Shown: piece by piece, positions 7,525 to 57,305 of the stretch
Layout of the letters: every line of letters starts with the position of its first letter
Numbering within the stretch: the stretch's first letter is position 1
Source: Rebecca billardiae RCC1528
Lineage: Eukaryota > Protista > Haptophyta
Reading direction: 5' to 3'
Assembly (NCBI GenBank): GCA_965240325.2
Contig: OZ251229.1
Location: forward strand, 1,178,001 to 1,242,000
Length of the DNA stretch: 64,000 bases
Notes under the pieces: generated by a model
What the model saw: only the letters and a program-made list of their open reading frames with translations
Databases searched by the model: none
Told to the model about the DNA's origin: nothing
Program-made: the position numbers and the translations under genes

Positions 7525-8089
7525 CCACAAAACAGTACTGCCGCAATCACGCCTGTGATGATCCCTTCGCACAGCGCACTACTGTTGAGCTGTGTGCGTC
7601 TCTTATAATTCTTAGTAAACTGTAGCTGGGACTCTCTCTGCCCAGGCGCCGCTCGGCGGTGTCTCACATGACTGCTGGTTCACGACCGAGCCCGCGCCGT
7701 CGGTTGCCAGTCGGTGGATGGGCGTACGGCCGCGCCGCGCGCCGGGCGGGCCGCGCGCGGCAGAAAATTCTCCCCTACTTTTCACGTGTCATCCCTACAG
7801 GGCCATGCTACCAAGGCAGGGAGGAGTGAAGCACTGCTGCACGCCGCCCGGAGCGCCTATGACGGCGTCAAACGCAGCGAATGGACTGCCCACCCCTCCC
7901 TCCCGAAGATCCTTGTCCATCGTCCACTTTTCACGCGTCAATCAATCAATCATCCCGAGCTCCGCGCGCGTCGGGGCCATGTCATGAACAGCATCGGCTC
8001 AGCCAATCTGAGCACGACTGACCAGCGGCGTCAGCCCCGAGTGATGATCCCTTCGCACGCTCCCAAGTGATGATCCCTTCGCTCCCTCC

Positions 8090-10993
8090 CCCAAAATCCC
8101 TCCCGCCTTCTCCACTTTTCACGTGATGTCATCCCTACGCGGGGGACATGCTGTGACGAAGGATCGACGCGGCCAGACCATAGGTACGATCCCTTCGCGT
8201 GGCGGCGCACAACGTGTATGTACATATGACTGCTGGTTCACGACCGAGCCCGGACCGTCGGTGCAGATGGCGTGCTGCCGCGCGGCCGCGCGCCGGCGGG
8301 CCGCGCCGCGCGCCCGCGCCCGCGCAAAAAATCCCAACCCAACCCCGCCCGCCCCGCCCCCCCTCCTTCTCCACTTTTCACGTGTCATCCCTACGCGGGG
8401 GCCATGCTCAGCCTTGGAGTCAGCTGATTGTGAGATGGAAAAGAAGAATCCTTCCTCCCTCCCCCTCTCCCTCCCCCTCCCCTCCCCCCCAAATCCTCCC
8501 TTCTCCACTTTTCACGTGTCATCCCTACGCGGGGGCCATGCTGTGACGAAGGATCGACGCGGCCAGACCGGAGGTACGATCCCTTCGCGCGGCGGCGCAC
8601 AGCGTATGTATGTATATGACTGCTGGTTCACGACCGAGCCCGGACCGTCGGTGGATGGCGTGCGGCCGCGCGGCCGCGCGCCGGCGGGCCGCGCCGCGGC
8701 CGCGCCCGCCCAAAAAATCCCAACCCAACCCCGCCCGCCCCGCCCCCCCTCCTTCTCCACTTTTCACGTGTCATCCCTACGCGGGGGCCATGCTCAGCCT
8801 TGGAGTCAGCTGATTGTGAGATGGAAAAGAAGAATCCTTCCTCCCTCCCCCTCTCCCTCCCCCTCCCCTCCCCCCCAAATCCTCCCTTCTCCACTTTTCA
8901 CGTGTCGAATCCCTACGCGGGGGCCATGCTGTGACGAAGGATCGACGCGGCCAGACCGGAGGTACGATCCCTTCGCGCGGCGGCGCACAGCGTATGTATG
9001 TATATGACTGCTGGTTCACGACCGAGCCCGGACCGTCGGTGGATGGCGTGCGGCCGCGCGGCCGCGCGCCGGCGGGCCGCGCCGCGGCCGCGCCCGCCCA
9101 AAAAATCCCAACCCAACCCCGCCCGCCCCGCCCCCCCTCCTTCTCCACTTTTCACGTGTCATCCCTACGCGGGGGCCATGCTCAGCCTTGGAGTCAGCTG
9201 ATTGTGAGATGGAAAAGAAGAATCCTTCCTCCCTCCCCCTCTCCCTCCCCCTCCCCTCCCCCCCAAATCCTCCCTTCTCCACTTTTCACGTGTCATCCCT
9301 ACGCGGGGGCCATGCTGTGACGAAGGATCGACGCGGCCAGACCGGAGGTACGATCCCTTCGCGCGGCGGCGCACAGCGTATGTATGTATATGACTGCTGG
9401 TTCACGACCGAGCCCGGACCGTCGGTGGATGGCGTGCGGCCGCGCGGCCGCGCGCCGGCGGGCCGCGCCGCGGCCGCGCCCGCCCAAAAAATCCCAACCC
9501 AACCCCGCCCGCCCCGCCCCCCCTCCTTCTCCACTTTTCACGTGTCATCCCTACGCGGGGGCCATGCTCAGCCTTGGAGTCAGCTGATTGTGAGATGGAA
9601 AAGAAGAATCCTTCCTCCCTCCCCCTCTCCCTCCCCCTCCCCTCCCCCCCAAATCCTCCCTTCTCCACTTTTCACGTGTCATCCCTACGCGGGGGCCATG
9701 CTGTGACGAAGGATCGACGCGGCCAGACCGGAGGTACGATCCCTTCGCGCGGCGGCGCACAGCGTATGTATGTATATGACTGCTGGTTCACGACCGAGCC
9801 CGGACCGTCGGTGGATGGCGTGCGGCCGCGCGGCCGCGCGCCGGCGGGCCGCGCCGCGGCCGCGCCCGCCCAAAAAATCCCAACCCAACCCCGCCCGCCC
9901 CGCCCCCCCTCCTTCTCCACTTTTCACGTGTCATCCCTACGCGGGGGCCATGCTCAGCCTTGGAGTCAGCTGATTGTGAGATGGAAAAGAAGAATCCTTC
10001 CTCCCTCCCCCTCTCCCTCCCCCTCCCCTCCCCCCCAAATCCTCCCTTCTCCACTTTTCACGTGTCATCCCTACGCGGGGGCCATGCTGTGACGAAGGAT
10101 CGACGCGGCCAGACCGGAGGTACGATCCCTTCGCGCGGCGGCGCACAGCGTATGTATGTATATGACTGCTGGTTCACGACCGAGCCCGGACCGTCGGTGG
10201 ATGGCGTGCGGCCGCGCGGCCGCGCGCCGGCGGGCCGCGCCGCGGCCGCGCCCGCCCAAAAAATCCCAACCCAACCCCGCCCGCCCCGCCCCGCCCCTCC
10301 TCTTCTCAGTGTGTCACGTGTCATCCCTACGCGGGGGCCATGCTCAGCCTTGGAGTCAGCTGATTGTGAGATGGAAAAGAAGAATCCTCCAGCTAAAATT
10401 CTCCCTCCCCCTCTCCTCCCCCCTCCCCTCCCTCCCCTCCCCCAAAATCCCTCCCCTTCTCCACTTTTCACGTGTCATCCCTACGCGGGGGCCATGCTGT
10501 GACGAAGGATCGACGCGGCCAGACCAGAGGTACGATCCCTTCGCGCGGCGGCGCACAACGTGTATGTACATATGACTGCTGGTTCACGACCGAGCCCCCG
10601 GGACCGTCGGTGCAGATGGCGTGCGGCCGCGCGGCCGCGCGCCGGCGGGCCGCGCCGCGCGCCCGCGCCCGCCCAAAAATCCCAACCCAACCCCGCCCGC
10701 CCCGCCCCGCCCCTCCTCTTCTCAGTGTGTCACGTGTCATCCCTACGCGGGGGCCATGCTCAGCCTTGGAGTCAGCTGATTGTGAGATGGAAAAGAAGAA
10801 TCCTCCAGCTAAAATTCTCCCTCCCCCTCTCCTCCCCCCCTCCCCTCCCTCCCCTCCCCCAAAATCCCTCCCCTTCTCCACTTTAACTTTTCACGTGTCA
10901 TCCCTACGCGGGGGCCATGCTGTGACGAAGGATCGACGCGGCCAGACCAGAGGTACGCTCCCTTCGCGCGGCGGCGCACAACGTGTATGTACA
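8090..10993 (-). repeat. ~386-bp tandem array (~7.5 units), each unit with two copies of the U6 snRNA 3' half
   Basis: Period 386-388 bp in the central units, longer in the last two. The 44-mer CCTTCTCCACTTTTCACGTGTCATCCCTACGCGGGGGCCATGCT (e.g. 8365-8408, 8499-8542) is identical to 43907-43950. Degenerate units lie at 7555-7990, and the array continues at 12450-12574 after the Helitron. Confidence 0.92.
8439..8588 (-). ncRNA. Putative chimeric U6-like small RNA, type A (representative copy; 8 copies in array)
   Basis: TATACA at 8616-8611, 5' hairpin GCGAAGGGATCG...CGATCCTTCGT, U6 AGC/ISL module, G-rich tail and TTTT at 8442-8439; expression is inferred only. Confidence 0.4.
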
Positions 10994-12449
10994 CTAGAGA
11001 GTGAGTTGCAGCCGCCGCTGCACGCCGGCAGCGGCAGCTTCACGACCACCTTCAGACGTTCGCTTGGTTCGTATACCGGTAGCGGTGCGGACAGCGCTAC
11101 AGCCTGCGTTGACAACTGCGCAGGGCACGCATCAAGCGCGCGCCCCTACTGTCTACTGAGCCTCGGACCGTGTAAGGCTGGTGGACGGCCGTAAATAAAC
11201 AGCTGCAGGCGAGGCCCGGGGCGCAGATCCAGTAGAGCAGCACTGATCTGCGCACCGCCGTCGAGAGTTGCAGCAGCAGGGGCAGGCAGCCAGGTGACAA
11301 CCGCGCAGGGCACGGCACGCATCAAGCGCGTGCTCCCACTGGCCTCGGGCTGTAGGGCTGGTGGACGGCCGTAAACACTTGCAGGCGACGCCCGGTGCGC
11401 AGATCCAGTCGAGCAACACTGATCTGCGCGCCGCCGCCGAGAGTTGCAGCAGCAGGGGCAGGCAGCCAGGTGCCAGCCGCGCAGGGCACGGCACGCATCA
11501 AAACAGTTACAGGCGAGGCCCGGTGCGCAGATCCAGTCGAGCAACGCCGTCGCAACACGGACCGGCGCGCCACTCCGTCCGGAGGAGAGATGTAGAGAGT
11601 TGCAACCGCCGGGGCAGGTGACAACCGCGCAGGACACGCGTCAAGCGTGCGCCTCCTGAGCACCGGACATGAGAGCGGCCGTTATCAGTTGCAGGCGACG
11701 CCCGTCGTGCGGATCACTCGATCACTCGTCGAGCCGTCGGATCAATCGTCGAGCGTTACAGATCGGTCATCGGCCGCACGGTCGCGAGGTGCAGGCGAGG
11801 TGCAGGTGGAGGGCGGCCGTCGACAGTTGCAGGCGACAGGGCGTGAGCATCCTGCTCACACATCACCCCGACGGTCCACACCCTCGGTCGCAGCCCCGCG
11901 GCGCCCGCGGTGGCATCTCGACCTCCCGTCACGGCGGTCAGCCTGGCCCGAGCGGGCCCCTCTACTTGACGAGCGAGTATCATCCGGCGGTTGCTGTTCA
12001 AATGAGCCGCCTAACTTGAGTCGCGTCGACAAGTGTGCACGTTAAAACATAGTAAACTCTAATCGATCGACGGACCCTGATTGGCCCTCCATGTTTCGTC
12101 GAGAAGAATTTTCCTTCGGACGAACGGCAACTCGAGCGGAAAACATAATACATCGCGCAGCCATCACTCGACAAAAGCGTACTCCGAATCTTTTCTTTCG
12201 AGGCCACTACGTGCGAGGACTGTCCCAACTGCAGGCACAGTGGGTAAAACTCGTCGAAACGATTGTTTGGCAAGTAAAACCCGGCGAACCGATGGTTTTT
12301 CGGAGTAACATCCGTCGAACCGTTGGTTTAGCGAGTAAAAACAGCCGAACCGATGGTTTTTCATAGAGAAAACTCCGAATTGTGGGCATTTTCGTAACTA
12401 ACCCGACATCTGTGCCGCGGATCCACTTTACACGATTAAGTAGAGTAGA
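10994..12449 (-). mobile_element. Non-autonomous Helitron, copy 1
   Basis: Minus strand 5'-TC...CTAG-3' with hairpin TGCAGC-GGCG-GCTGCA 9 nt before CTAG; inserted between A and T with no TSD; the empty site (GTACA|TATGACTGC) is present in neighbouring array units. Confidence 0.92.
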
Positions 12450-15400
12450 TACGACTGCTGGTTCAAGACCGAGCCCGGACCGTCGGTGCAGATGGCCGGC
12501 GTGCGGCCGCGCGGCCGCGCGCCGGCCCCAAAAGACTCCGCCCACCCGCCCCGCCCCGCCCCCCCATCTCCACCTAAACCTAGGCGTCCGCCGCCTTCAC
12601 CGCCTCGCCCAGCGCCGCCTGCACCTTCGCCGGCTCCCCCGCCTGCTCGCCGGTCGTCGCCCGCAGCGCCGCGCGCTGCTGCTCGAGCTGCTCCGCGCGC
12701 GCGCGCTCCGCGCCCTTCCGCGCGCCCGCCTGCCGCCTCGTCCGCTGCTCGAGTTGCTCGAGGCGTGCTCGGCACTGCCGTTGCCGCGCACCGCGGCGAG
12801 CGCGATCTCCTCCGTCTGCTGGACCGCGTCGGCCGCGCGCCACGCGGCCGCGGCCAGGTCCTCCTGATGCGCCGCGCGCTCGCACTCCCAGCGCTTGCGC
12901 TCGTCCTCCAGCTCGCGCGTCGCGCCGAGCTCGCGCTCGGCGGCCGCCGCGAGTTGCGTCTGGGCCAGTTGGAGCGGCCGCTATCCCTCGCCACCGATGC
13001 GCTCGACTCCATCGGAGGTCCTTGGCGGCTGCAGCTCGGGCGGCGGCTGCCGCTGCGCGCGCACGCGCACGCGCCCGCGTGCCTCCCCGTCAGTCTCCGA
13101 GCCCGAGCCAACACCCTCTCTTGCCAGTAACTGGCCGCGCGCGAGACCCCGCTGCTCGGGTGCGGCGCCAGCCGGGCCGTACGCACCCGCACTCGACGGC
13201 GTCGAGCGCGGGGTGCTGCACGCAGTAGCCGCCAGGCGCTGGCGGCGGGACGCGGCGCGGCGCCGAGCGCGACCGGCGGTGTCCGCTGCAGCGCGCGCAC
13301 GCGAACGCCTCGCGCGTGACGCCGGCGTCTCGAAGCGCGCGGCGCATCTCTCCGCCTGCGTCTGCGCCACGCCGGGCGGCGCCTTCCGCTTGCGGCTTGC
13401 CTCGACCTCGGTGAGCTGCTCCAGGTGCTCGTGGGTGCGTGTCCATCTCATCGTGTAGAGCTCGCCGTGCGCGTCGTGGCGGCTGTCGAGCTCTCGGCGG
13501 TTGGTCGCACTGGAGGTGTCCGTGGAAACGTGAGACAGCGCGACCCGCTGCGAGCAGCTCCTCACCCTCCAGAGGTGCGCCTCGATCTCGCGATCGCTCT
13601 CGCTCGGCCTGGAGCCGCGGACGCGCTGCACGACGTTGCCGAGCACGCGCGCGGACGGGAGGTCGAGCTCCTCGGGCGGGCTGGCGCGCGCAGCAGATGC
13701 CGAAGGTGATGCCAAATCTCGCCAGCACGTGCCGCGCGCATTCTCGATCACGTGGGTGCCACACGCGACAGCCTCTGCCGAGATGCCACGATCGGAAGCG
13801 CAGGCCAAGCGCGCGCTCCCGGCCGGCGCGATGACTGTGCGGCACTCGGAAGGAGAGCCACACGAGAAGGGCTGCCGCACGTCATCCACGTACGGCTATC
13901 AGAGCACCTTGGGCGGCTGTCCGAGCTCGTTCGCGCCCGTGGTCCTCCCTGGCTGTGGGGTGTGTTGCACGTCTCGACCCAGAGGCACGGCTCGTGTACT
14001 CGTCGCTCTAGATGCCACGTTCAAAGTTCGGAACGCGACGGCGCTTGGAGTCCTGGGATACCCGCTCCTCCCGCCCGTGCGGACTCACCGCCATAGCGAC
14101 GGGGCGGGACGTGGCGCCGCACGGCGCCGCGGAGGGCGTGGGCGCCGACGCCGTCACCCTCCGGAGGGGCGTCCTCCGTCCAAATTTCGACGTCGAATCC
14201 GGTGCTCACCAAGTATTATAAAGTAGCCAATCCGGATGCCAGCTGGCGACCGGTGGGTGCAGTACAGCAACGATGGCGGCCCGCCGGTGCGTCGCGATCG
14301 TGGGAGCTTCAAGGCTCGCCAAGGCTGGCCCGTGAGTGGCGGAGACACTGACCACCGGCGAGCCCCTGCGCAGTGCGCGCTTAGCAACGCGCTTACAAGA
14401 GCTCGCGTGTCCATCCCCTCCGGGCACGCTGCTCCGTCTGGATATCGGGTGACCAACGCGGCGTCCGCCTGATGACCCTCGTGCGCAGGACGGCGACAAC
14501 TGGTGAGCTGCTAAGCTGCTCGGCGGTGGCGAAGGCAGCAGTCGAGCTGCCGATCAAAGGTCGACGCGCGCGTGCCTGTGCATGCGATGCGCGGGGCAAC
14601 GCGCGCCATCGCATCGCCCGTCGCCGTCGGCCATGCAGCTGCTGCCGGCCGGCTGACATGACGGCGCGGCGTGAGCCCAGCGGCTGCTGCGTCGAGTACC
14701 ACGCGGGTGTCAAGGGGTGGCAGGCGGCGTCGTCACGGCGTACGCTGCGTGTGCTGCTCTCGCTTACCGTGGCTTGGTCGGCTGCTCAGCCAGCGCGTGC
14801 CTGTGGCCGATGCTGCGTGGGCAACGGCGCTCCCCCAGCCCGGGACAGGCTGCGCGCGGGCTGGCGGGCAGCCAGCCTGTAGCCGATGTACACGCGGCCG
14901 CACGCTGGCATGGCCGAGGGCACGCGGCGGCGTGGTGTCGACATCGAGCCGGGGGCCGCCGGCCGCGCTCGCACGCGTCGCGCACTCGCCCGCCGCCGCT
15001 GGGTTTGGGCGCGCTCGCGGGGAGGGCGCTCAGCAGGCATTGGTCACACGCCCTGCCGCCTCTGCCTGCCTGGCGCTTGCGGACGCGCCTTGCGGCAGCC
15101 CGGCGGCCACCGTCCGCGCCAGCGGCTCCGATCTGGTGGAAGCTGCCGTGCAGGCGGGCGGCTGCAGGCTCTCCCGATTGGAGCATGCGCTGTCGAGTCT
15201 GCCCGAGCCGACGGCGGACACGCCAGCAGGTGCTGTGTCCGTGTGCCCTCACGGCCGGCGCTCGACTCCGCGCGGCGTGCAGCGGCAGCGGGAGGGGTGG
15301 TGCCCCCGGCGGGCGGCGGTGGTCGATGCAGCTGCCGGCGCGATGGTGCAAGCCAGCTCGGCAGACGCACCGGCCGCGGCGCCGCCACTGGACCCACCCA

Positions 15401-17066: not shown

Positions 17067-18299
17067 AGTCCGTTAATGGCGAGCATAGAACCCAAGGATT
17101 CCTTTGCTATAGGTGCATTCAACCATAATACCCAAGGGAGTTACTGATCCGCCCCACCCGGGGAGCCTCCACTCGGAGCCGAAAACGCGACGACCAAGCC
17201 GTAAAGTAGTACGACGTACTACTCTTATTCTTAGTAAACTGTAGGTTGGCTCGACTTTTGCGAATTAGGCGGCATCATCACATACGGCGCTCCCTCTCGT
17301 TGGTCGGCGAGTCGCCACTCTGAACGACCTTGGAATAATACTCGGCTATCTGACGACGCGCTCTTCTCTCTAATTAACCAAGTGTGCACGTTAAAACATA
17401 GTAAACTGTATGCGTGATTCCTTTGGCGTGGTCTGAAGCGGTGGCTCCAGATCCAAGGATTAGCGAAAGTGCGAAACTCGGAAAATGAGAGGAAATTATT
17501 CAACACCCGCCGCGTGCGGCGTGCGCCGCCGCCGGCCGCGTGCTCCGCCGCAGCCATCCGCCGCGAGGCGCCGCCCGCTGCCGCGCCACCGCGGCCGCGG
17601 ATGTGCGCACGCGGGGATGGCGCACGCGGTCGGGCAGAGGCGCAGCACCCTTCTACGCCGCCCTGCGCCGCGCGACTCGCGTCTGCCCATCTTCTCCGCG
17701 CCTTGAGCCCGCACGGACGTGTGCGCCGCCTCTCACCTCAGCCGCCTGTTGTCGTCCCCACAAAGTATGCGCGCGCTGAGCGGAACCCGAGGCGCGCATC
17801 CCAGAAAGGCGCGAGCCATGTTACGGTACGGTCGTAGGCGCGTGCCATGGTGCCCAGCGGCTTCACGCGCGTGCGTGCCTCTCTGCTGCTCCCGGCAGGC
17901 AAGGCGCCCATGTCTCTGGCCGAATGTGGCGGCGGCGCGAGCCCGCGCTCGCTGGCCTGCAGCTGACCGTCGCGGTGCGAGGGCGCGAAGCGCTGGGCCA
18001 CGCGCAAGCTACGGTAGCTCGTCGCCTCGCTACCGCCCCGCCGCGTCCGAGCGGAAGCTCTACTGGACATCGCGCGGCCTCGTCCTGGCGGCACCGCGAT
18101 GGGCGCGAGTGACGCAGCGAGGTCGGGCGGCGGCGCGGCGCGCGGAGGAGTCCGGGGAGCCCGGCCCCAGCGTGCGCCAACCGGTCGTGACTCGTTAACT
18201 GTCCCGGTCAGTGGGAGCTACAGTTTACTAGGAACATGAGACACACACGGTCAGGCTGCAGGCGACCCACTGACAGCTATAATATCGAAGTTTCGAACG

Positions 18300-35558: not shown

Positions 35559-37523
35559 TAGAGAGTGAGTTGCAGCCGCCGCTGCACGCCGGCAGCGGCA
35601 GCTTCACGACCACCTTCAGACGTTCGCTTGGTTCGTATACCGGTAGCGGTGCGGACAGCGCTACAGCCTGCGTTGACAACTGCGCAGGGCACGCATCAAG
35701 CGCGCGCCCCTACTGTCTACTGAGCCTCGGACCCATTCTATGATTTAACGACACAGGTAGGACGACGCGGGTCTCCTGATTCGTCGGCGGCAGTGCCCGA
35801 TCGTCGACACGAAGTCGGCGTTGGTGGCAGAGCATAGCCTGCACCGCGATCGGATTGCTTGAGCGCGGCCTTGAGCTGCTGGAGCGCGATCCACCTGCGC
35901 TGCGCGGCTCGCATGGCCCTGCTGTGCCCCGAGCGAGGGCGATGGTGCAGGTCCGGATGTCAGCTGGCAGTCTCAGCCGCTGGTAGCAGCTGGTCGTACC
36001 TGCCCCGTGCTCCCCGGGCGGTCGCGTACGCGCTTGCCGCTCGAGCCAGCTGGCTGGCTGGCGGCGGCTGGCGCTGCGGCGTCGTCCAGGGTGCGCTTCG
36101 TCCGCTGCTGCGGCAGCTCCTCGTCGTCCAAGTCGTCGCCCGGGGGCGAGTCTCGGTCCTCGTGGAGCGGGGCAGCAGGGACTGGCGTGGGTGCAGCGGT
36201 CGGTGCCAGGCGCGCCGCCTTGCGCGCCTGGCGTTCCTTGACGGCGCGGCGCGTCGAGGAGCGACGGCTCGATCGTGTAAGGCTGGTGGACGGCCGTAAA
36301 TAAACAGCTGCAGGCGAGGCCCGGGGCGCAGATCCAGTAGAGCAGCACTGATCTGCGCACCGCCGTCGAGAGTTGCAGCAGCAGGGGCAGGCAGCCAGGT
36401 GACAACCGCGCAGGGCACGGCACGCATCAAGCGCGTGCTCCCACTGGCCTCGGGCTGTAGGGCTGGTGGACGGCCGTAAACACTTGCAGGCGACGCCCGG
36501 TGCGCAGATCCAGTCGAGCAACACTGATCTGCGCGCCGCCGCCGAGAGTTGCAGCAGCAGGGGCAGGCAGCCAGGTGCCAGCCGCGCAGGGCACGGCACG
36601 CATCAAAACAGTTACAGGCGAGGCCCGGTGCGCAGATCCAGTCGAGCAACGCCGTCGCAACACGGACCGGCGCGCCACTCCGTCCGGAGGAGAGATGTAG
36701 AGAGTTGCAACCGCCGGGGCAGGTGACAACCGCGCAGGACACGCGTCAAGCGTGCGCCTCCTGAGCACCGGGCATGAGAGCGGCCGTTATCAGTTGCAGG
36801 CGACGCCCGTCGTGCGGATCACTCGATCACTCGTCGAGCCGTCGGATCAATCGTCGAGCGTTACAGATCGGTCATCGGCCGCACGGTCGCGAGGTGCAGG
36901 CGAGGTGCAGGTGGAGGGCGGCCGTCGACAGTTGCAGGCGACAGGGCGTGAGCATCCTGCTCACACATCACCCCGACGGTCCACACCCTCGGTCGCAGCC
37001 CCGCGGCGCCCGCGGTGGCATCTCGACCTCCCGTCACGGCGGTCAGCCTGGCCCGAGCGGGCCCCTCTTGACGAGCGAGTACTGGTATCATCGCGGTTGC
37101 TGAGGAGCCGCCTAACTTGAGTCGCGACGACTGTAATCGATCGACGGACCCTGATTGGCCCTCCATGTTTCGTCGAGAAGAATTTTCCTTCGGACGAACG
37201 GCAACTCGAGCGGACAACATAATACATCGCGCAGCCATCACTCGACAAAAGCGTACTCCGAATCTTTTCTTTCGAGGCCACTACGTGCGAGGACTGTCCC
37301 AACTGCAGGCACAGTGGGTAAAACTCGTCGAAACGATTGTTTGGCAAGTAAAACCCGGCGAACCGATGGTTTTTCGGAGTAACATCCGTCGAACCGTTGG
37401 TTTAGCGAGTAAAAACAGCCGAACCGATGGTTTTTCATAGAGAAAACTCCGAATTGTGGGCATTTTCGTAACTAACCCGACATCTGTGCCGCGGATCCAC
37501 TTTACACGATTAAGTAGAGTAGA
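35559..37523 (-). mobile_element. Non-autonomous Helitron, copy 2
   Basis: Near-identical to 10994-12449 plus a 541-bp insertion; ends read G|TC...CTA|T. Confidence 0.9.
35734..36274 (-). mobile_element. Family X insertion (541 bp) inside Helitron copy 2
   Basis: Absent from copy 1 (empty site CCTCGGACC|GTGTAAGG at ~11161-11177); begins with the reverse complement of TTAAATCATAGAAT. Confidence 0.85.
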
Positions 37524-39603
37524 CGTCAAAGCTCGTGAGCATGATCGAGTATACGGAACGACAAACAACTCTTGTGAACGCCTCTCGACAAAGAGCTTGC
37601 TCATGGTGCCTTGAGGCTCCTCGATCAGCCAGGCCTTGCCCGTTCCAAAACGAGTGCATCCACCGTTCCAATAGGCAGCAGTTCTTGCCCCCATTAGTGC
37701 GGTGCATAGAGGCAGCAGTAGTGTGTGATGTAGGCGTGGATCAAGTGCTCGCCGTAAGTGGAGCTAGTAGGTGAGGCTCGAGCGAGAAGATGAGCACAGA
37801 TCACGACTAGAGATCACACAGCAGCGCCTTGAGATGGTTGTCCATGATCGCCTTCGTGCCGATGAGATTGACTCTCATCGTTGCCGTCTGCAGCACGTAC
37901 ACGGACGAATAGACGCCTGGTACGAGTACGCGAGGGCAGCATGAGCGCCATGATATCGTCGCCGCCAGGATGATCGCGTGGTCGAAGTAGATGCGGTCGT
38001 CAGGCGTGTGGTAGAATCGGCAGATAGAGTGGAGCATCGAATGAGATCGTGTCCGGGGCCGAGTGAAGATGAGTGACCAGGTAGAGGTAGTTGGCGCAGG
38101 GAGCTGCGACGCCAATAGAGACAGTAGAGACCGTAGTTAGGGCAGCAGATCAGATGTAGTTCGTGCGGATGTAGTTAGAGTGGATGTAGTTCGAGTAGTT
38201 AGTTCGGGTGGGTGTATCCGATGAGAAGTAGTCGCAGGTGCGTCGTCCGTTGCGGCAGCCGCCGTGATGCCGTAGTGGTCCTCAGCGGTGATCAGGCGCG
38301 TCGGAGTAGAGGCGGCAGCGGTAGCATCGGCAGCGGAAGCAGCAGCAGCGATAGAGGTGCACGATAAGAACTCGTCCAGGTTGGCAGCGCGGCGGCGGGC
38401 AGAGCAAGTACTGGTAGAGGCCCTGCAGTCGGTCACCGGCTGAGCTGGTACGATTAGTTGAGCGCGTTGGCGCATCGCCGGCGGATCGGCGGTCAGCGCG
38501 GTAGGAGGCTCATCGTGCTCGGGGATAGCGTCGAGGGTAGATAGAGCGGGTAGAACACGAGCGTGTAGAGAACGTACAGAACGAGCGGCTTCGCCGTTAG
38601 CACCGCTGCGTGTAGTCTTTGTGTCTTTAAATCATAGAATTAGTCTACTCTACTTAATCGTGTAAAGTGGATCCGCGGCACAGATGTCGGGTTAGTTACG
38701 AAAATGCCCACAATTTGAAGTTTTCCCTATGAAAAGTCAGCGGATCGACGCTTTTTACTCCGAAAGTCAGCGGATCGAGGGGTTTTACTCCGAAAGTCAG
38801 CGGATCGCCGGCTTTTACCCCGCGTACCCGCGGTTGGGACAGTCCTTGCACATATTCGCCGCGGCAGAAATACTGAATCGACGTAGGGTGCTGTACGCGT
38901 TGTCCTTTCCTGCTCGAGTTGCCGTTATTTAGGCCCCGCGCGGCCATGAGTATAATATTGTCATCACCTCGTTCGCCGGCGCAGTCATGTCTTCCAGCGC
39001 CTCGCGTTCGCGAGGCGTGCCCGAAACAGCTACACACTCACCGGTGCCCTGGGGCACCGGCGCAACCCGCATCCAACACTCCGCATATCGCAGACACGAC
39101 ATATCCACCCGCGCTTGCACACGCACGCCCCCCCCCCCCCCCGCCTGCTTGCTGACCATGCAAGGACTGGCCCGGTGCGGACGCCAAGCGCATGCTCATC
39201 GGTGAGTCATCCCGACACGACGGCGAACACCTGCGGTGTGCCTGTGCGGAGGCACTGGGGAGCGACACGCGGAGTGTGGGCCGCCCTCCTTCCTGAGCAG
39301 CGCCCGGCCCTCAGGTGGAGACCGCGCCCGTCCCGGCCTCCCCGCGGCGGCCGCGAGCCCCCCCCCCCCCCCCTTTTCCCCATCCTGCCCGTTTCGCGAC
39401 AAACCCCTCTCCCCCCGAAACGCACGACGGGCCGCCGTGGTCCGGGGGACCGGCGGGGCCACTCCGGACCTGGGTTTTGAAATTTGATTTCAACCCCGCG
39501 CGCCGAAATGCCTTTGGCACCAGCACCGACCTCGCTCGCACCGCAGTGCTTCCGCACCCGCCCCCCGGCCCTCCGCAGCCCCGCGCCCGCCACACTGGCC
39601 ACC

Positions 39604-40707
39604 ATGCCCCCTTACCAGCACGGCTTTTTCCGCGACCGTCTCAACAGCAGGAGCGCCTTGACCTTCTTCCCCTCTTCCAACAACTTCGAGCGCGGGCTGC
39701 AGGTGGAACGGCCGAGCACCCCCACCGCCAGGCGGGATGCGGGCCAGCAGATGTGCACGACGGTGATCAAGCTGAGCGCGCGCTGCCTGAGCGACGTGGC
39801 GCCCAACTCGCAAGGCGGGCGACTGCTCGCAGGACTCACCCAGGACCCCAAAGGCAATAAGCACGTTTTCTCCTTCACCGGCTCGGTGCTCGAGAACATG
39901 ACCATCTGCCGCCGCCTGGCCACCAGCCTGTGCATGCCGAACATTCTCACGGCGTGCACCACGGAGCTCACGCAGGAGATGCTCGCGCTGTCGGCGGCCG
40001 ACCTCGCAACCCAGGCGAAGGACGTGTCCCTCACGCTCCCGGTTAGCCCCACGATGACGCTCGTGCAGTTTCACAGGGCCCTCTACGAGCAGATCGTGCC
40101 CGACATCAACAAGTACGTGACCAACGGTGAGCACGTCGAGACCAACATCTACTCCGGCGGTGTGAACCTGATCTTCCTCCGCCTGCGTTTCATGCCCATC
40201 GACCCCGAGCACCCCATCTTCTTCGCGCCGCTCAAGCCGAGCCGCCGCATCGCCGGCGCCGCCCGCGTCCCACACAACCTGTGGGGCGTGCCGCCCGCGC
40301 CGCCTGTGCCGCCCGCGCCGCCCGCCGCTGCGCGCCGCCCTGCTCCTCAGCCGGCCGACCAACAGGCGGCGGACCCCGCCGGCCCGGAGGCGGAGGAGCC
40401 CGAGGGGGAGGGTTCGGACGATGCCATCCCGCCACCCCAGCCGCCAACCGCGGCCGCGCCGTCGGACGGGCCCGAGGTGCAACAGGCCAGGCCGGCGCTC
40501 GGGGAGTCCAACTACCGCCTGGTCCTGCCCCCCGGCGCCGCGGCAGCCGGCAAGCGCGCGGCGACCGAGCCGTCCACGCCGGCGGAGGAGGATGGGCCCT
40601 CCTCCGCTGGCGGGAGCGACGCCAAGCCGGCCAAGCAGGCTCGCACCGCGTCCCTCGGCGACCCCCCCCGTGACCTGGCTGCCGCCGTGCCGCAGTCGCT
40701 GGCGTAG
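39604..40707 (+). CDS. Hypothetical 367-aa protein carried by the family X / Helitron insert
   Basis: ATG at 39604, strong GC3 bias, globular-looking N-terminal ~215 aa and Pro/Ala/acidic tail; no recognised domain. Confidence 0.65.
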   Translation: MPPYQHGFFRDRLNSRSALTFFPSSNNFERGLQVERPSTPTARRDAGQQMCTTVIKLSARCLSDVAPNSQGGRLLAGLTQDPKGNKHVFSFTGSVLENMTICRRLATSLCMPNILTACTTELTQEMLALSAADLATQAKDVSLTLPVSPTMTLVQFHRALYEQIVPDINKYVTNGEHVETNIYSGGVNLIFLRLRFMPIDPEHPIFFAPLKPSRRIAGAARVPHNLWGVPPAPPVPPAPPAAARRPAPQPADQQAADPAGPEAEEPEGEGSDDAIPPPQPPTAAAPSDGPEVQQARPALGESNYRLVLPPGAAAAGKRAATEPSTPAEEDGPSSAGGSDAKPAKQARTASLGDPPRDLAAAVPQSLA

Positions 40708-40770
40708 AGCCGCGCGCGGCGCTGGCGCGCCAGACGCGCCCGGTTGGGCAGCGCAGGCACCCTCAGCGGC

Positions 40771-40887
40771 CAGGACGACGACTTCCTCAACGGCAAGGGC
40801 GACGACTTCCTCTGCGGCCAGGGCGACGACTTCCTCAACGGCAAGGACGACGACTTCCTCAACGGCAAGGGCGACTACTCCCTCAAC
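40771..40887 (+). repeat. 24-bp minisatellite (~5 units)
   Basis: G(A/G)CGACGACTTCCTCAACGGCAAG-type units. Confidence 0.85.
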
Positions 40888-43861
40888 TCGGCAAGGCCGC
40901 TAGGCCGCGCACACCGGCCCGGGCGACCACATCCACTACCTGCACTACTGCATCAACTTGAACAGCCTCGGACGACGACGACGCGGGCAACTACATGATG
41001 ACCAAGGCCGACGACGACTGCAAAACAGCGGCATCCCCGGGCGCCCACTACCTCAGTGACCGTGTGATCAGCATCGGTTATTACGACGACTCCCTCACCC
41101 GCGGCCAACGCGCTCCGACATCCTCCATTAACTCCATTCAGTACAATCAGTACTTCGACAGACGAATCAGGAGAGCTGCGCCCTCGTGCCTGTGTCTTTA
41201 AATCATAGAATTAATCAATCAGGGTCCGTCGATCGATTACTTACATCGACGCGACTCAAGTGAGTGAATGCACAGGAGGGGCACACCCGCGGGCCAGGCT
41301 GACGGTCGAGGTGCCACCGCGGGCACCGCGGGGCTGCGACGGAGGGTGTGGACCGTCGGGGTAGTGTGTGAGCAGGATGCTCATCACGTCCTGCCGCCTG
41401 CAACTGTCGACGACGTCCGTCCTCCACCTGCACCTCGCGACGGTGCGGCCGGCCACCGATCTTTCTGTAACGCTCGACGAGTCAGATCCGCACGACGGGC
41501 GTCGCCTGCAACTGATCACAGCCGCCATCCTGCCCGGGGCTCAGGAGGCGCGCGCTTGGTGCGTGTTCTGTGCGGTTCACCTAGCTACCTGCCCCGGCGG
41601 TTGCAACTCTCTACATCTCTCGACGGTGGCGCGCCAGTCCGCGTTGCTACGTCGACTGGATCTGCGCCACCAGGCGTTGCCTGCGCAGCTATTTACGGCC
41701 GTCCACCAGCCCTACCGAGTCCGAGGCTCGATAGGTGCGCACGCTTGCTGCATGCCGTGCCCTGCGCGGTTGTCACCTGGCTGCCCGCGCCCCTGCTGCC
41801 GCAACTCTCGACGGCGGTGCGCCGATCAGTCAGTTGCTCCGGACTGGATCTGCGCACCGGGCCGTCGCCTGCAACTGTTCACGGCCGTCCACCAGCCTCC
41901 AGTCCGAGGCCCAGTGGGAGCACGCGCTTGATGCGTGCCCTGTGCGGTTGTCACCTGGCTGCCTGCCCCTGCTGCTGCAAGTCTCGACGGCGGCGCGCCG
42001 ATCAGTGTTGCTCGACTGGATCTGCGCACCGGGCCGTCGTCTGCAACTGTTCACGGCCGTCCACCAGCCTCCAGTCCGAGGCCCAGTGGGAGCACGCGCG
42101 TGATGCGTGCCCTGTGCGGTTGTCACCTGGCTGCCTGCCCCTGCTGCTGCAAGTCTCGACGGCGGCGCGCCGATCAGTGTTGCTCAACTGGATCTGCGCA
42201 CCCGGGGCGTCGCCTGCAGCTGTTCGCGGCACCTTGCACGGCCGTCCGCCAATGGTCCTACTACAATCAGAGCGGTTCAGTGACTCACTGTAGTGACAGC
42301 CCGGGCGCGCGCTTGATGCGTGCCCTGCGCAGTTGTCAGTTGTCACCGCACCGCACGGGCAGGCTGCCACCGGCCCCGCCCCGCAGCGTCAGTGAGCCCG
42401 TCAGCAGCACCGTAGCGGGACCGTGGCACCGCAGCTCCGCCTCATCGGACGACCAGCGGCTTATCTCCTAAACCCCTGGACGGGTAAAACAGGCTGCCAG
42501 CTAACCATCAATCTGAGCAGTTCATTTAAGAAGTCCTCAGGGCTGGCACGTGCGCACGGCGGCGTCGTCTGCATCAGCGAGTGCCGAGTCTGCAGCGCGC
42601 TGTCCGCACCCGGCTATCAACGTCTGAAGGTGATGGTCGTGATTCGACTGATTCGTGAAGCTGCCGCCGGCGTGCAGCGGCGGCTGCAACTCACTCTCTA
42701 GTTTGAAAGAAATGGCCGTCCGCCACGCGGGCAGCTTCGCTCTGGTCGTGCGCGTGCGCGTAGGCGAGGGCTGTGCGACGGCGCGTCAGGTGGGCTGGTC
42801 TGGTAGTACCTCAGAAACCCTTCCGGCGCTCATGTCTCGGCTTCCCGGCGTCTTTTGCGCCCATGCTCACTAGCCGAGCGGGTGCGTTTCAACAACAGGC
42901 CGGCAGGCGCCTACGCCACCGCTTCATCGCACAGAGTACGCTGCAGGAGCCAGGCGCGCGCTGTCTGGAGAGAGGGCCAGTGTATATGTTTCCAATGAGC
43001 GCGCGCTCAAGGCGCCATTCAAGCGCGTGTCGCGGGCAGAAGCGGACTCAGTAGGCAATGCTTGGCTTTGGCGACCGAGTTGCAGTCGAGCCGCGCTAGC
43101 AGGCGGAGGAGGGCCCAAGGCGGCACATGTCTGCCGCGCCGAAGGTCGCTTACAAGTGCCATCCGACGCTGCTGCCGGCAGCGCTGCGCCCTCGGCTCGC
43201 TGCCATCCGACGCTGCTGCGCCCGCGCCCAGCTTGGGCAGCAGCGGCTGCGCTCGACTCCGCGCCGAGTGCGGCGGCAGCAGCAGGGATGGTGCCACGGC
43301 GGGCGGCGTGGGTCGCTGGAGCTGAAAGCTCGGCGGTGTGCGCCCGAGGGGCCTGGGCGGTGGGTGCATTGAGCGCGCTGACACCTCTCGCCTCGCCCGG
43401 CGCGCTCGAGCCGCTGCCATCCGATGCTGCCGCGCCCGCGCCCTGTCGCGCCGAGTGCGGCTGCAGCATCAGGGATGGCGCCACGGCGGGCGGGCGGCGG
43501 TGCATGCAGCTAGCAGCTCGGTGCTGCACGCGCGAGGGGCCTGGGCGGCAGACGCGCGCAATGCAGTGACGCTGATGCACGCGTCAGGCGCGCTGGCCAG
43601 CCCCCGGAGCTGTTGCTACGACACTTCTTCTGTCCTGCTGCGAGCCGAGCCGCCAGCAGGTTCCCGGGGGCGGGCAATGCCGGTCAGCTCATATTCATAA
43701 GGCCGGCGGCGCAGACCAGTCGTAGCCCGGCAGGTAGGCGATGCAGAAGTTATCAGCAGCATCATGCATCGTCATCACTACATATCTGCCTAGACGAGCC
43801 GGGAGCGCTGCCGGAGAGCTTCCTCCTTCCTCCCTCTCTCTCTCTCTCCCTCCTCCCTTCT

Positions 43862-44002
43862 AAAACTCCCCCCCCCCCCCCCCCCCCCCCCCGCCAGCCC
43901 CGCCCCCCTTCTCCACTTTTCACGTGTCATCCCTACGCGGGGGCCATGCTAATCTTCTCTGTATCGTTCCAGGTTTGAAAGGTGGTAGGCCGAAGCCAAA
44001 CC
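43862..44002 (-). ncRNA. U6: U6 spliceosomal snRNA gene (core 43907-44002, G-rich extension to TTTT)
   Basis: Minus strand GGTTTGGC-TTCG-GCCTACC 5' stem-loop, then TGGAACGATACAGAGAAGATTAGCATGGCCCCCGCGTAGGGATGACACG (ACAGAGA box, AGC triad, ISL); TTTT at 43865-43862. Confidence 0.93.
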
Positions 44003-44025: not shown

Positions 44026-44031
44026 TATATA
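44026..44031 (-). promoter_or_regulatory. TATA box of the U6 gene (Pol III type-3 promoter)
   Basis: TATATA at -29 to -24 from the predicted +1 G, within otherwise very GC-rich DNA. Confidence 0.7.
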
Positions 44032-45638
44032 CTGTCACGCTGCCCACTTTTGGCCCCATTGTGGGCCTCCGGGGCGCGCCTGTCGGGCGGCGCTTCCCCT
44101 AGGAGGGGGGGGCGAGTCGCCACCCACCGACGCGCGGGCCGCCCGTCGGTGGGTGGCGATCGTCCGTCGCGCGCGGCGTCGCGCGCCTCCGCGCCGCCGC
44201 CGATCGCGCCGCGCGCGGCGCCGCCGCTGATCACATCAGTCCCCGCCGGCGCGCGTTGCCCGGGTCAGCTGGGAGCGGCCGCGCCGCGCCCGTCACGCTC
44301 GGCGAGCTCGGGCGGCTCCCGGCCCGCGCTCCCGCAGCGCCCTCCTCCATGGGCGCCCGGCGGCGCCCGCGCGCGCGCGCGCGCCTCGCGCCGCCAACGC
44401 AAACCCTAACGCGCGGGCGGAGGGCTTGGCCGCCCGCGCGTGATGCGGGCGGGTCCGCCATCGCTCGGGCGCCCGCTTGGAGTCCGGTCCGGGGCAACCT
44501 CTCATGACAGGGCTGCCCCGCCGTTGCCGGTCCGGCATGCCGCGCAGGCCCGAGCGCGCCGGCTCCACGCGCACCGCCCACTTGTGCGACGACGGTCGCC
44601 AGGTGCATGTCCGGAGGGGTGTGGTGCGGTGGTACTTGTCGCCCGCCCAATCACGAGCCCAGCTCTGACCGTCTCCGACCTGAGGCGCTCGTGCGCGAGC
44701 ACCGCAAGCCCGATCTCGCACCGTCCCCATGTGCCCTGCTCGCACGCGCGTCGGCCCTGCCCGGGCGGTGCGTGAACGTGCTCTCGCCAGTGCGGCCGCT
44801 CATCTCGTCAGCGCTGCTGCGGCCGATGGCCTGCATGGGCGCGCGCTGTTCCGCTGGGCGCCTACTCCACACCCCGGTACGAGTGCTCGCGCGCAGCTAG
44901 CCAGCGCTGAGTGAACCTAGGCGGTCTCTCAGGAGACGATCGAGCGCCCGGCGTGCACGGCGAGTTGTGTGCGCGCGCGCGCGCCATGGAGCACTCGCAG
45001 TGCTATGGCCAGACGACGGCGCAGGACCGGTGCGCGAATCGTCCGATCTGATGATCACCGCGGCTACTCATGATCCGCGCCGGCGGCGTCGGATAGTTTA
45101 TCCGTCGGCTGCCGTCAGTCTCGATGATGACGATGGTGCACACGATCCGAATAAGCGGGCGCGGCGTCGGTGGCACCGATCAGCCTCTGACTCGGCAGTC
45201 TCACGGCTGACTCGCCATAGCCCAGGCTTCGCTCTAGTGGGTGTCCGCCGCGATCCGTGGCACTACGCGCCACGACGACCGCCAATACAGGCTTAGCAGC
45301 AGCAGCGGTCGCAGCCACTCGTAAGCGCAGCATTGGCAGCTCCAAGATCATCCGCGCAGGCCTGGCATCACGCACATCCGCTGTCAGCCACTGCGCACCA
45401 CGGCTTTGTGGTGGCGCTTCGCGCGGCCCGCAGGCAGACGTGAGGCTGTCAGACTGGGCATCACCAGTCCTCGGTGACATCTCACCCGGCACTCCGGGCA
45501 GGGAGTTTGGGGCTGCCTGACCCACCAGTGCGCCTGCCCCGCTTCGGGGCCGTCCTTTGCCCCGCCCGGTCGCTTCCGGTGGACCTATCGCCCACACGCG
45601 CGTCTAGGGAGCACCCACGCTTCCTCGTCAGTCGAACG

Positions 45639-53167: not shown

Positions 53168-54860
53168 ATATACTTCTCCGGGCCTTGGAGCGTGGGTCAC
53201 GGCCACTGCATGACGTCTGCCGGCCCGGCCGGCGGCCACGCTGGACAGCACGTCTGAATAATCGGCAGGGTCCAGTCCCGATGCTTGAGCGTATGCGTCA
53301 TCGACGACACCTGTAACGTGCGCGACTCGTGCTACAGCCTCGCCCGGGCGAGGTGCCCGGTGCGGCCGGCCTGATGTCGCGCCAGACTGTATGTCGTCTG
53401 CGCCCGTCTGAGGCCTGGCCGCGTCCAGACCATGTATGGCCTTGGCGGCGTGGGCCAAATGCTGCCAGCAACAGTCGGCACGGCGCGGCTGCGCGAGCTC
53501 GCTCGCTGGCGCCTGGCCGGCACCAGGGCGCATCATTCGCAGCCGCATTTCCGGTCGCGCCAGCCGTCAGCTCGCGCCGGCGGGCGTCAGGCCTCAGGCG
53601 AGCCCGCACACGGAGCACAGCCAAGGCCAGGGGCAAGAGCGAGGTGCGCGACCCCGCCGCACGATGCGGCACGGGTGGTGCCACACAAGCCCGAGGACAC
53701 ACCAGCTGATACAGCACGGGCGCTTCGACTGCCTCCGACGCCGAAACCTGACGGATTGGTCAGTGGGCCGGCAGGGCTGCGGAGGCCGGCCGACCAGCAT
53801 ACAGTAGCGTTTGCGCGGCACGGCCGGGGTGGCCGCGGACCGCACCATTCCCCGCCGAGGGATTGGCCCCATTGTGGGCAATGGCCGTCCCTGGGGACGA
53901 TGACCGCCCCCTCCTTGCGGCGTGGCCGTGCTCGGGCGTGCACGGGGCCGCCTCAGGCGCGGCGGCCTCAGGCACGGCGCGTCGTTGCGCGTGGATGTCG
54001 CCCTGCATCGCGTTCCGTCGCGCAGCGGCGTCCGGCCGGGGCACCGCGCGGCGCGGCCCGCGCTGTCACTCGGGCCCGCGGAGACGGCCGGCCCGCAGGT
54101 CTCGTGGGCGCCAGGCCGGGCGCGCCGAGGCGCGCTCGGAAGCGCAGGTCTGGCCCCACGCTTGAGGGCGCGCCGGCGTCGCATAGATCTGCCCTGCCCG
54201 CATGATCACCGGTGGGCTTGCGCGTCATGTGCAATGCTGGAGCCCGCCGCGCGGCGTCACGGCGGATCACGCGCGGCTCGTGCGAGCTTGCTGAGGCCTG
54301 GGCGTTGCGGTGAGGCGCACGTCGCGCGGCTTGTCACGATAGGCCCCGAGGTGCGGCTCGCGGCGCGCCATGGAGCGCGCGTCGGGCCGTCGCAGAGCTC
54401 ACCGCATCCCGCCGGCGGTCAGCGACATCGTGATCGTCCATCCCTGGGCGTGAGGCAACGTGCCCCGGACCAACTCGCGGAAAGGACCCCGGACCGGGTT
54501 GGCGACGACGACGGTTGGTCGGAAATCCGTTACTCGTAGACTCCTGAAGTATCCCGGACTAGTGTAACAGTCGGTCTTACGCAAGACGACCAGCGAACAA
54601 GTTGAAAGTTGGCGCGATGATCTCGACGCGGAGCGCTCGTTGCGCCCACGTGCAGCGCGCGGCGGCGCGCCACCTGCGGCACTCAGGTTACCCGCGTGGG
54701 CTGACCGCGCTCCGCGGCCAGGCTGTAAATCTGTGCATCCCGCCGCCCGACCACGAGCGCAGGACTCCATCGGGACTCCGTCTGCTCGGTGCACGCGGGA
54801 TATGAGACTACCCTGATCCGATTGGGGTTCTGCTGCATGCTGCAGGCGTGCGATGCTCAT

Positions 54861-55660: not shown

Positions 55661-57305
55661 GCGCAGCGGGTGCTGCCGCAGCGCGGCGTGGCCGGCGCGT
55701 CATCGTCGTCCGCGGGGTGTCGTTGCCGCCATGCGACACGCATCGGCCCGAAAGCGCGTGGCGGTTCATTCGTCAGACCGATTTGTGATGACTGCTTGTT
55801 CACAATCTGACACACTCAGAGTCACTCACTAGTCAATACTTATAGTACTCACAGTGACGAATCACCAATGAGTCCAATGACACCACCTCTTGCCGAACAC
55901 CCGCCCAGATCGGGTGTTTCGGGTCACACCCACCTACCGCCCGCGAGGGGAACGAGCGCATCCTCGCGGCACTCATCCCACGCCTACGCGCCCTTGCCGA
56001 AGCCAACGCCACCGCGCGCGCCGCCTCGCGCGGCGCGCCACCTGACGGCCGCTCAGCGGTCGCGCGCGCGCGGGCACGAGCACGTGCCGCCGCCGCCGCC
56101 TGCTGGCGTGCGTGAGTGGGCGGAGCTCTTCTCGCGCAAGCGCGTGCACATCACGCTCGCGCGTTGGGCGCGTCCGCCAGCCGTCGGCAGTGTGCAGGCT
56201 CGCGTTCATCCTTCGTGGACGCAGATGGGCGGCGGCGGTGGAGGAGGATGAGCGCACGCGCCCCCTGGCCACTCGGGTGCTACTATGCCGGCAGTGCTTG
56301 TGCCGACGTCTGCGCACCGCCTCTCTCAGCGCAGTGCGCGCGTGCTCCGTGCTGGCCGCTGGGTGGGGCCACGACGACTACGACTGTACGAAGAGCGGTA
56401 CCAGCGCGACCGTGCGCGGCGCGGACGCGCCGCCGCCGGCTGCGCGCGGCCGTGCGCGCGTGCGGCCGAGCGGCCGAGTGCGCGCGGTGGCCAGCCTCTC
56501 GCACGGCACCGCGCAGCGCTCCGGCGCGCACACACCGGCCTGCCCCACCTGCTGCGCGCGAGCTGCGCTGTGGGATTGGACGACACCGGCTGCTGCCAGC
56601 GCCACCGGCCCACTGGTCGCGCGCGAGTGCGCTCGGCTCGAGCGCCGCGCGCGCGCACACCAAGGCACGCTTGGGATGGCCGCTGCCTCGACGCGAGACG
56701 CGCGCGCGCGACCGGCCGCAGCCGCTGCCGCCGTCGGTCTGGTCCCTCAAGGCGGTGCGACCTGCGCACACGTACATGCCTCCTCGCTCAGCCACAGCTC
56801 GTGGCCCGAGTTGATCGCATCCCGCGCCAGGGGGGCGTTCAAGTGTGGGCTGCTCCTCCTGACTTTTAAGGAGGTGACGCTCGCATGCGCGCTAATCGTA
56901 GCCGCGGCAAAGTCAACGAGGAGCAAGCTGCGGGGGGCAGAGCGGAGCACGCCAGCGTTTGGATGCCACGCAAGCAACGCGCCGCCTTCGCACGGCAACT
57001 CGACGGCCGCAGCGCCGCACGCCACGCGCCGGCGCGAGTGGCCAGACTTACGGCCCACGGCATGGGCGTAGCGCCGCTTGAAGTCGACTCTCACTCCGGA
57101 TGCACAAGCTGGCACAAGTCCGGGAGGAGTTCAGCGGGCGCGGCGTCCGCGCTGCAGCACGCCGCGCGCGCGCACGAGTGAAAACCGCTTCAGCGCGAGC
57201 GGGGCACCGGGCGCCGGGACCGCCCTCGCCGAATTTGGGCAGAGGGAGCGCGCGTGTACCGGCAAGCGGTCGAGTGGGGCGATTCGGCGCGCTGCTCAAG
57301 CCCGC

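Follow-up and report, generated by a model that had tools for sequence, protein, structure and literature searches.

In this work we analysed an array of repeats derived from the U6 small nuclear RNA (snRNA) gene in a window of 64 kb (the whole stretch of 64,000 nucleotides, contig OZ251229.1, positions 1,178,001 to 1,242,000) of the haptophyte Rebecca billardiae RCC1528. The array is most likely a satellite-like higher-order tandem repeat of defective U6 gene units and not a set of working small-RNA genes, a reading to which we give a probability of about 0.58. Its units carry two copies of the 3' half of U6, are homogeneous in the centre of the locus and decayed at its edges, lack the proximal promoter element of the true U6 gene and bear mutations within the U6-derived modules, and the locus is split by a Helitron-like element. 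An earlier note, made from the letters of the sequence, had proposed amplified RNA polymerase III (Pol III) genes for U6-like RNAs with swapped 5' domains and had listed a U6-derived satellite among its options; the U6-derived, amplified nature of the array is retained here in the form of that last option, while the genes with swapped 5' domains are not.

The Rfam covariance search, Tandem Repeats Finder and BLAST were applied to the 64-kb window, the G+C content of which is 69.6%. Each unit of the array contains two modules, called type A and type B, each preceded by its own partner sequence. The elements of the array are the following.

8106-10991, minus strand: core higher-order tandem array, period 386 bp, 7.3 copies, 96% matches (Tandem Repeats Finder)
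9047-9432, minus strand: reference unit
9419-9434, minus strand: 16-mer CGCCATCCACCGACGG
9385-9390, minus strand: TATACA within a (CATA)n-like stretch, 28-30 nt upstream of the A partner
9317-9362, minus strand: A partner, the end of the long monomer
9273-9316, minus strand: reference type A U6 module, U6 nucleotides 53-96
10455-10498, 10045-10088, 9659-9702 and 8499-8542, minus strand: the other unaltered type A modules
10870-10921, minus strand: altered type A module A1, with 6 additional nucleotides
8885-8930, minus strand: altered type A module A6, with TC added in the 3' strand of the stem-loop, the sole change in its unit
8106-8152, minus strand: altered type A module A8, with a G>T change in the stem and an added CAT
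9183-9212, minus strand: B partner, which ends the short monomer and contains a weak hairpin of 5 bp (UCAGC/GCUGA)
9139-9182, minus strand: reference type B U6 module
9911-9954, 9525-9568, 8751-8794 and 8365-8408, minus strand: other type B modules
10314-10344 and 10730-10760, minus strand: altered type B modules B1 and B2, preserved over the first 31 nt alone, with a rewritten 3' part

The 44-mer AGCATGG...GAGAAGG, which corresponds to U6 nucleotides 53-96 and comprises the AGC triad, the internal stem-loop and the 3' region, is found exactly 11 times in the window, 10 times in the array and once in the U6 gene (expected number, 0), and five more copies carry small changes (A1, A6, A8, B1 and B2). 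Eight type A and seven type B modules strictly alternate, in agreement with the earlier description of a 44-bp block present 15 times, and the TATACA spacing, the hairpin, the T-runs and the 16-mer were also found as described there. On the minus strand the reference unit reads 16-mer, TATA-like (CATA)n stretch, A partner, type A module, G-rich tail and T4, then B partner, type B module, G-rich tail, T6 and a GC-rich spacer. It is composed of two sub-monomers, a long one of 252 nt that ends in the A partner and a short one of 134 nt that ends in the B partner, both of which open with the same 44-mer; a head-to-tail unit made of diverged sub-monomers is what defines a higher-order satellite repeat.

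BLAST with the U6 locus placed the start of homology at U6 nucleotide 53, the A of AGC, in every array copy, so that the common stopping point reported earlier holds on the 5' side. On the 3' side the match is not confined to the 44-mer: similarity probably runs past it into the G-rich tail, and the type B match continues to position 114 of the U6 locus, although in sequence of such low complexity this does not reach significance under shuffling. U6 nucleotides 1-52 have no second copy in the window outside 43951-44002 (BLAST). Since the array is head to tail, the end of one monomer stands directly before the module of the next, and one ancestral junction would thus have been copied into every unit. 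The A and B partners are therefore tails of preceding monomers, and not 5' domains swapped onto U6.

U6 is the single gene that Rfam finds in the window at the gathering level, and its upstream region provides the reference with which the array can be compared.

43896-44002, minus strand: full-length U6 snRNA gene, 60.3 bits (Rfam)
44026-44031, minus strand: TATATA of U6, at -29
44050-44066, minus strand: 17-mer GCCCACAATGGGGCCAA, resembling a proximal or upstream sequence element (PSE/USE), at -48 to -64 of U6
44118-44158: inverted pair of 16-mers (CGCCACCCACCGACGG), arms 9 nt apart, about 115-155 nt upstream of U6

The core of the 17-mer fits the upstream sequence element consensus published for algae and other protists, ACCCAYAW or GNCCCAYW (PMC8287931). 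An identical copy lies at 53863-53879, where 0.16 occurrences are expected at up to three mismatches and where no shuffled sequence gave two, and these two sites likely define the snRNA promoter element of this organism. Downstream of the second site (minus strand, to about 53650), no TATA box follows the 17-mer and there is no Rfam match at E <= 1; the site is a candidate for an unannotated snRNA-type gene of the Pol II class. In the array, the 17-mer has no copy at up to three mismatches. The 16-mer, by comparison, is present in five exact copies in the array and as the inverted pair upstream of U6, which may be a binding site or a distal element. The array 16-mer (9419-9434) and the GC-rich spacer that adjoins it (9435-9485) form a 75-column homology to the region from -140 to -215 upstream of U6, and past the 16-mer no similarity to the U6 upstream region is detected (p = 0.56). 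Because the 16-mer is the end of this block, it represents distal U6 context and not a proximal promoter element.

A type-3 Pol III promoter combines a proximal element and a TATA box at fixed distances, of which the array has only the TATA-like (CATA)n. This stretch is of microsatellite type, differs between core and edge units, and is interrupted in one unit by the Helitron-like element. The Rfam U6 model (RF00026), proposed in the earlier note as a check, finds in the array only matches to the 3' half (model positions about 51-105) that score 14-23 bits (gathering score, 44); at E <= 10, the array has no match to any other Rfam family.

The U6 gene itself has no T-run at the usual position, and only a TTTT (43863-43866) beyond a tract of more than 40 nt with a G-quadruplex motif (43868-43908). 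Either U6 has a G-rich 3' extension in this organism, or this copy would be a variant; the length of the G-run in the 43863-43908 region may be uncertain in the assembly.

The core array was reported earlier at 8090-10993. It was recovered there, and the locus to which it belongs is larger: BLAST searches of the window with a single unit and with the array edge extended it to about 7555 on one side and about 12575 on the other, so that the whole locus, of about 5 kb, is made of an upstream partial unit, a Helitron-like insertion, the core array and decayed downstream units.

7555-12575, minus strand: whole U6-derived repeat locus
about 12449-12575, minus strand: upstream partial unit (unit-versus-window BLAST)
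10994-12449, minus strand: Helitron-like non-autonomous element, within the TATA-like stretch of the first unit
7923-7982, minus strand: decayed U6 module, in which the AGC is lost, the loop is expanded and TTGA repeats are inserted
7768-7810, minus strand: decayed U6 module, about 84% identical to U6
7555-7767, minus strand: last partial unit, composed of spacer, 16-mer variant, an 83-nt insert in place of (CATA)n, then GCGAAGGGATCATCAC, after which repeat homology stops

Three central units (9047-9432, 9433-9818 and 9819-10204) are 100% identical to each other, the units at 8659-9046 and 8271-8658 are at 99.5% and 98.7% identity, and the edge units at 10205-10619, 10620-10991 and 8084-8270 are at 89%, 87% and 89%, respectively. 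The edge units at both ends of the array carry common older variants, namely CATCTGCACC, CATATGTACATACACGTTG and a T4 placed directly after the module; their TATA-like stretch reads CATATGTACATACACG and an 18-nt variant replaces the 16-mer. The upstream partial unit shows the same variant, in the order U6 GTGGAGA, G-rich tail, T4, GC spacer, 18-nt variant, then ...CAGCAGTCGTA. The identity of the central units, the older variants common to edge units of 87-89% identity and the identity of about 84% in the outer modules suggest that the core was re-amplified recently. A core homogenised to 98.7-100% between diverged edges is the usual picture of a satellite core recently re-amplified inside an older array.

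A few features of the decayed downstream edge deserve mention. At 8036-8090, the old form of the A partner start, GCGAAGGGATCATCAC, is duplicated in tandem (26 bp, 2.1 copies). The terminus motif AGTTTACTA ('Family Y') is found inside the last partial unit (7608-7625) and inside the Helitron-like insertion (12049-12057), and the 18-mer at 7608-7625 is common to 17227-17244. The downstream array end, where GCGAAGGGATCATCAC is followed by AG, was considered as the native flank of the duplication junction and rejected, as GCGAAGGGATCATCAC aligns with the start of the A partner and not with its end.

The Helitron-like insertion, of 1.46 kb, splits the U6-derived locus: the upstream partial unit breaks off at unit position 45, the very position with which the array continues at 10991, and when the element is removed the flanks rejoin to the edge-unit sequence CAGCAGTC(A/G)TA followed directly by TGTACATACACG. 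The element has the hallmarks of a Helitron, with a 5' TC (start TCTACTC), a 3' GC hairpin followed by an CTCTCTAG end (CTAG, of the CTRR type), insertion between A and T without target duplication, and other copies with the same termini.

35559-37522, minus strand: Helitron-like copy
38645-42702, plus strand: Helitron-like copy

The base that flanks the 5' end of these two copies is G. The family contains an internal 176-bp tandem repeat, GCCCACAAT lies about 65 nt from the 5' end in all three copies, and the copy at 35559-37522 has an extra insert of about 538 bp at about 35734-36270.

The decayed modules inform on the age of the junction with U6. For the module at 7982, the partner shows homology to the A partner (p = 0.002), and for the module at 7810 it follows the long monomer collinearly, through the 16-mer, CAGCAGT, CCTCC, CTG and CCTT(G/C)GT up to the AGC. 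Since the partners of both decayed modules match the A partner or its junction, the type A junction is common by descent to the old and young parts of the locus. The partners in the older edge units are accordingly read as type A junctions that have diverged, and not as additional partners. The B partner can be matched loosely with the 16-mer region of the long monomer, which would agree with an origin by deletion from that monomer.

The following history can be proposed from the sequence. The ancestral U6 repeat unit would have consisted of U6, a G-rich tail, a T-run, a GC spacer, the 16-mer, a promoter and the next U6, a layout suggested by the match of the spacer and 16-mer with the U6 upstream region and by the succession of module, G-rich tail and T-run, as in U6. 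One such unit would have lost the proximal promoter and U6 nucleotides 1-52, and the truncated unit would then have multiplied head to tail, so that the end of the previous monomer now precedes each U6 3' half. The monomers would have diverged into a long and a short form, and a recent new round of amplification, probably through unequal exchange or replication slippage, would have affected the 386-bp dimer in the central part of the older array. G tracts that match the G-quadruplex motif follow every module and the true U6, the array holding 25 of the 35 minus-strand motifs of the window, and tails of this type may favour slippage or unequal exchange. The Helitron-like element would have landed later, in the first unit.

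Several observations weigh against a satellite of defective units. The type A and type B modules of the core are identical to U6 at 44 of 44 positions, versus about 84% in the decayed outer modules, and this identity would require either gene conversion from functional U6 genes or selection, since at equal rates the core lineage should also have acquired a few changes. The distance between the TATA-like box and the A partner resembles that in U6, and both monomers end in T-runs. The type B junction lies at the same U6 nucleotide as the type A junction, with dissimilar partners, and may stem from a second, separate event there. The upstream end of the array retains neither a U6 5' half nor a promoter. 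Finally, although the tails resemble the U6 3' flank in collinear order, the resemblance does not reach significance when dinucleotides are shuffled (p 0.05-0.38); as homology beyond the terminator is not significant, it was not used to argue for an origin at the DNA level.

Expression of the units, which we consider unlikely, is an idea kept alive by the core modules being identical to U6, by the TATA-like spacing and by the T-runs. Pol III would start about 30 nt downstream of the TATA-like box, at the GCGAAGGG positions, and would make a minus-strand RNA of about 105-150 nt, predicted to contain a 5' hairpin, the AGC triad, the U6 internal stem-loop and the G-rich tail; this RNA would keep the U4 stem II pairing without reading a 5' splice site, and might act as a decoy or regulator. 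The 28-30 nt between TATACA and the partner reproduce the spacing from TATATA to +1 in U6, the edge units keep a T4 at a U6-like position, and the 16-mer held in common with the distal U6 upstream region could be an enhancer. Against this, the array lacks the proximal 17-mer of U6 and of the second locus, its TATA-like box is a variable microsatellite, and type B has no promoter-like sequence of any kind. Modules A1, A6, A8, B1 and B2 have private mutations, the stem-loop is among the parts affected, and the T4 terminator that the edge units have at the U6-like position has become T3 in the amplified core variant. Taken alone, the A partner folds into an imperfect hairpin (GCGAAGGGAUCG...CGAUCCUUCG, -18.5 kcal/mol, z -1.96) with UCAC after it, whereas in the full type A RNA the 3' arm of this hairpin is predicted to pair with the 3' end of the module instead, and the predicted type A and type B RNAs do not fold better than shuffled sequence (z -0.25 to +1.14). 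Because the 17-mer is absent, the modules are mutated and folding is at the level of shuffles, the earlier proposal that the units are Pol III genes is not supported. It is very unlikely, in our view, that the array is transcribed without the U6 proximal element, perhaps via the TATA-like box and the 16-mer, and yields abundant half-U6 RNAs, which would act by titrating U4, LSm or Prp24-type factors or by assembling into particles with G-quadruplex tails.

In all type A copies the last 10 nt of the A partner (CCUUCGUCAC, 9317-9326) can pair with the 3' end of the module (GUGGAGAAGG, 9273-9282), which counts in favour of an expressed RNA. This pairing would close the AGC/stem-loop region in a telestem-like manner; it is a minimum-energy prediction that is not significant relative to shuffles.

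The other explanations concern the origin of the junction. A common breakpoint could be mechanistic and not inherited, if breakage and joining recurred just 5' of the stem-loop palindrome, for example by replication template switching, and were followed by amplification. The A and B partners have no significant similarity to each other and yet both join at nucleotide 53, all junctions read AG-CATGG, which makes the joining point ambiguous by 2 nt and permits a microhomology of that length, and the palindrome and G-quadruplex tracts flank the site. Such a hot spot is distinctly unlikely, as the window contains just two junction types, the decayed copies hold the type A junction by descent, and the loose alignment of the B partner is that expected of a deletion derivative. 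A highly improbable alternative, raised in the earlier note, is that the partners are the ends of an element that inserts specifically into U6, of which the array would be a relic; such an element could be Dada-like or a site-specific retroelement. The precise breakpoint inside a multicopy RNA gene and the abundance of mobile elements in the window speak for it, but the partners are found nowhere else in the window (BLAST of the unit), as the ends of longer transposons might have been, and they do not have the CTAG end of the local Helitron-like elements. Dada-U6 inserts at U6 nucleotides 65-70 with a GCGCAA/GCGAAA duplication and has CAGAGAAGA sub-terminal repeats (PMC3706591), whereas the break here is at 52/53, with neither a duplication nor a U6 5' half; the Dada-U6 sub-terminal repeats TCTTCTCTG/CAGAGAAGA are absent from the partners, a transposase not having been searched for. 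The Dada alternative is thus at variance with both the insertion site and the target duplication. Scarcely credible, lastly, is a chimera made at the RNA level, in which a 5' exon ending in AG would have been ligated to U6 at the catalytic centre, reverse-transcribed and amplified. The junction does read NAG-CAUGG for all partners, but this AG is equally explained as nucleotides 53-54 of U6 itself, and there are neither poly(A) tails nor target duplications. The homology of the unit spacer and 16-mer to U6 upstream DNA, which is of a non-transcribed type, also disfavours an RNA intermediate.

Satellite-like amplification of defective units can be compared with several known systems. Tandem U6 arrays occur in fish and invertebrates, and tandem multigene families of U1, U2, U5 and U6 are known (PMC3706591, PMC7754599). 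The array resembles them in its head-to-tail U6 sequences with 3' tail, terminator and spacer, and in a spacer homologous to the real U6 upstream region, and differs from them in the absence of U6 nucleotides 1-52 and of the proximal element and in having two truncated, decaying copies per unit. Satellites and higher-order repeats can also arise from small-RNA genes, such as those derived from 5S rDNA or tRNA genes. As in these, a gene fragment and its flank have been amplified, with a homogenised core, diverged edges and a dimeric period, but the source here is U6 and the break falls exactly at the catalytic AGC triad. Dada-U6, which is found in U6 arrays, likewise has a precise recurrent breakpoint inside U6, although at 65-70 with a 6-bp duplication and not at 52/53 without one, and Dada-like termini are absent here. 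Mammalian genomes contain U6 pseudogenes and chimeric retrocopies mediated by long interspersed nuclear elements; these are dispersed, and in them a full-length U6 makes up the 5' part of the chimera. They are similar in being non-functional U6-derived copies joined to foreign sequence, whereas in the array the 3' half of U6 is on the 3' side, the copies are in tandem and the flanks are homologous at the DNA level. U6atac snRNA also presents an AGC triad and a stem-loop behind a different 5' region; the array, unlike it, has no U6atac Rfam match (E <= 10) and no AAGGAGAGA-type box. Literature searches that covered the sequence itself, U6 of Chlamydomonas or haptophytes and snRNA-derived satellites brought up no description of a satellite of U6 3' halves. 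A metagenome scan with a 28-nt U6 core returned only the canonical U6 of an unrelated AT-rich eukaryote, and a search for look-alike DNA via the translation of a spurious plus-strand open reading frame of the array returned nothing.

If the satellite reading holds, the locus would be a clean case of an essential small-RNA gene cluster decaying into a satellite, with a history that can be dated by its old edges, its young core and the Helitron-like insertion. The analysis also yields the likely snRNA promoter element of this alga, which has a bearing on the search for other snRNA-type genes and on the design of guide-RNA expression cassettes. If, on the other hand, the units were expressed, U6 RNAs reduced to the catalytic half would have no precedent as a natural tool or regulator in the assembly of the spliceosome; such half-U6 RNAs, with the AGC triad, the stem-loop and the U4 stem II pairing kept, could be a natural dominant regulator of that process, held identical to U6 by selection.

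Pfam searches of 18 open reading frames near the array gave no neighbouring gene usable for synteny. Elsewhere in the window, a single open reading frame of 1381 amino acids (57078-61223, plus strand) encodes 22 Sel1 repeats, an F-box-like motif and an RCC1 propeller; it has only distant database matches of bacterial type, the best at about 35% identity.

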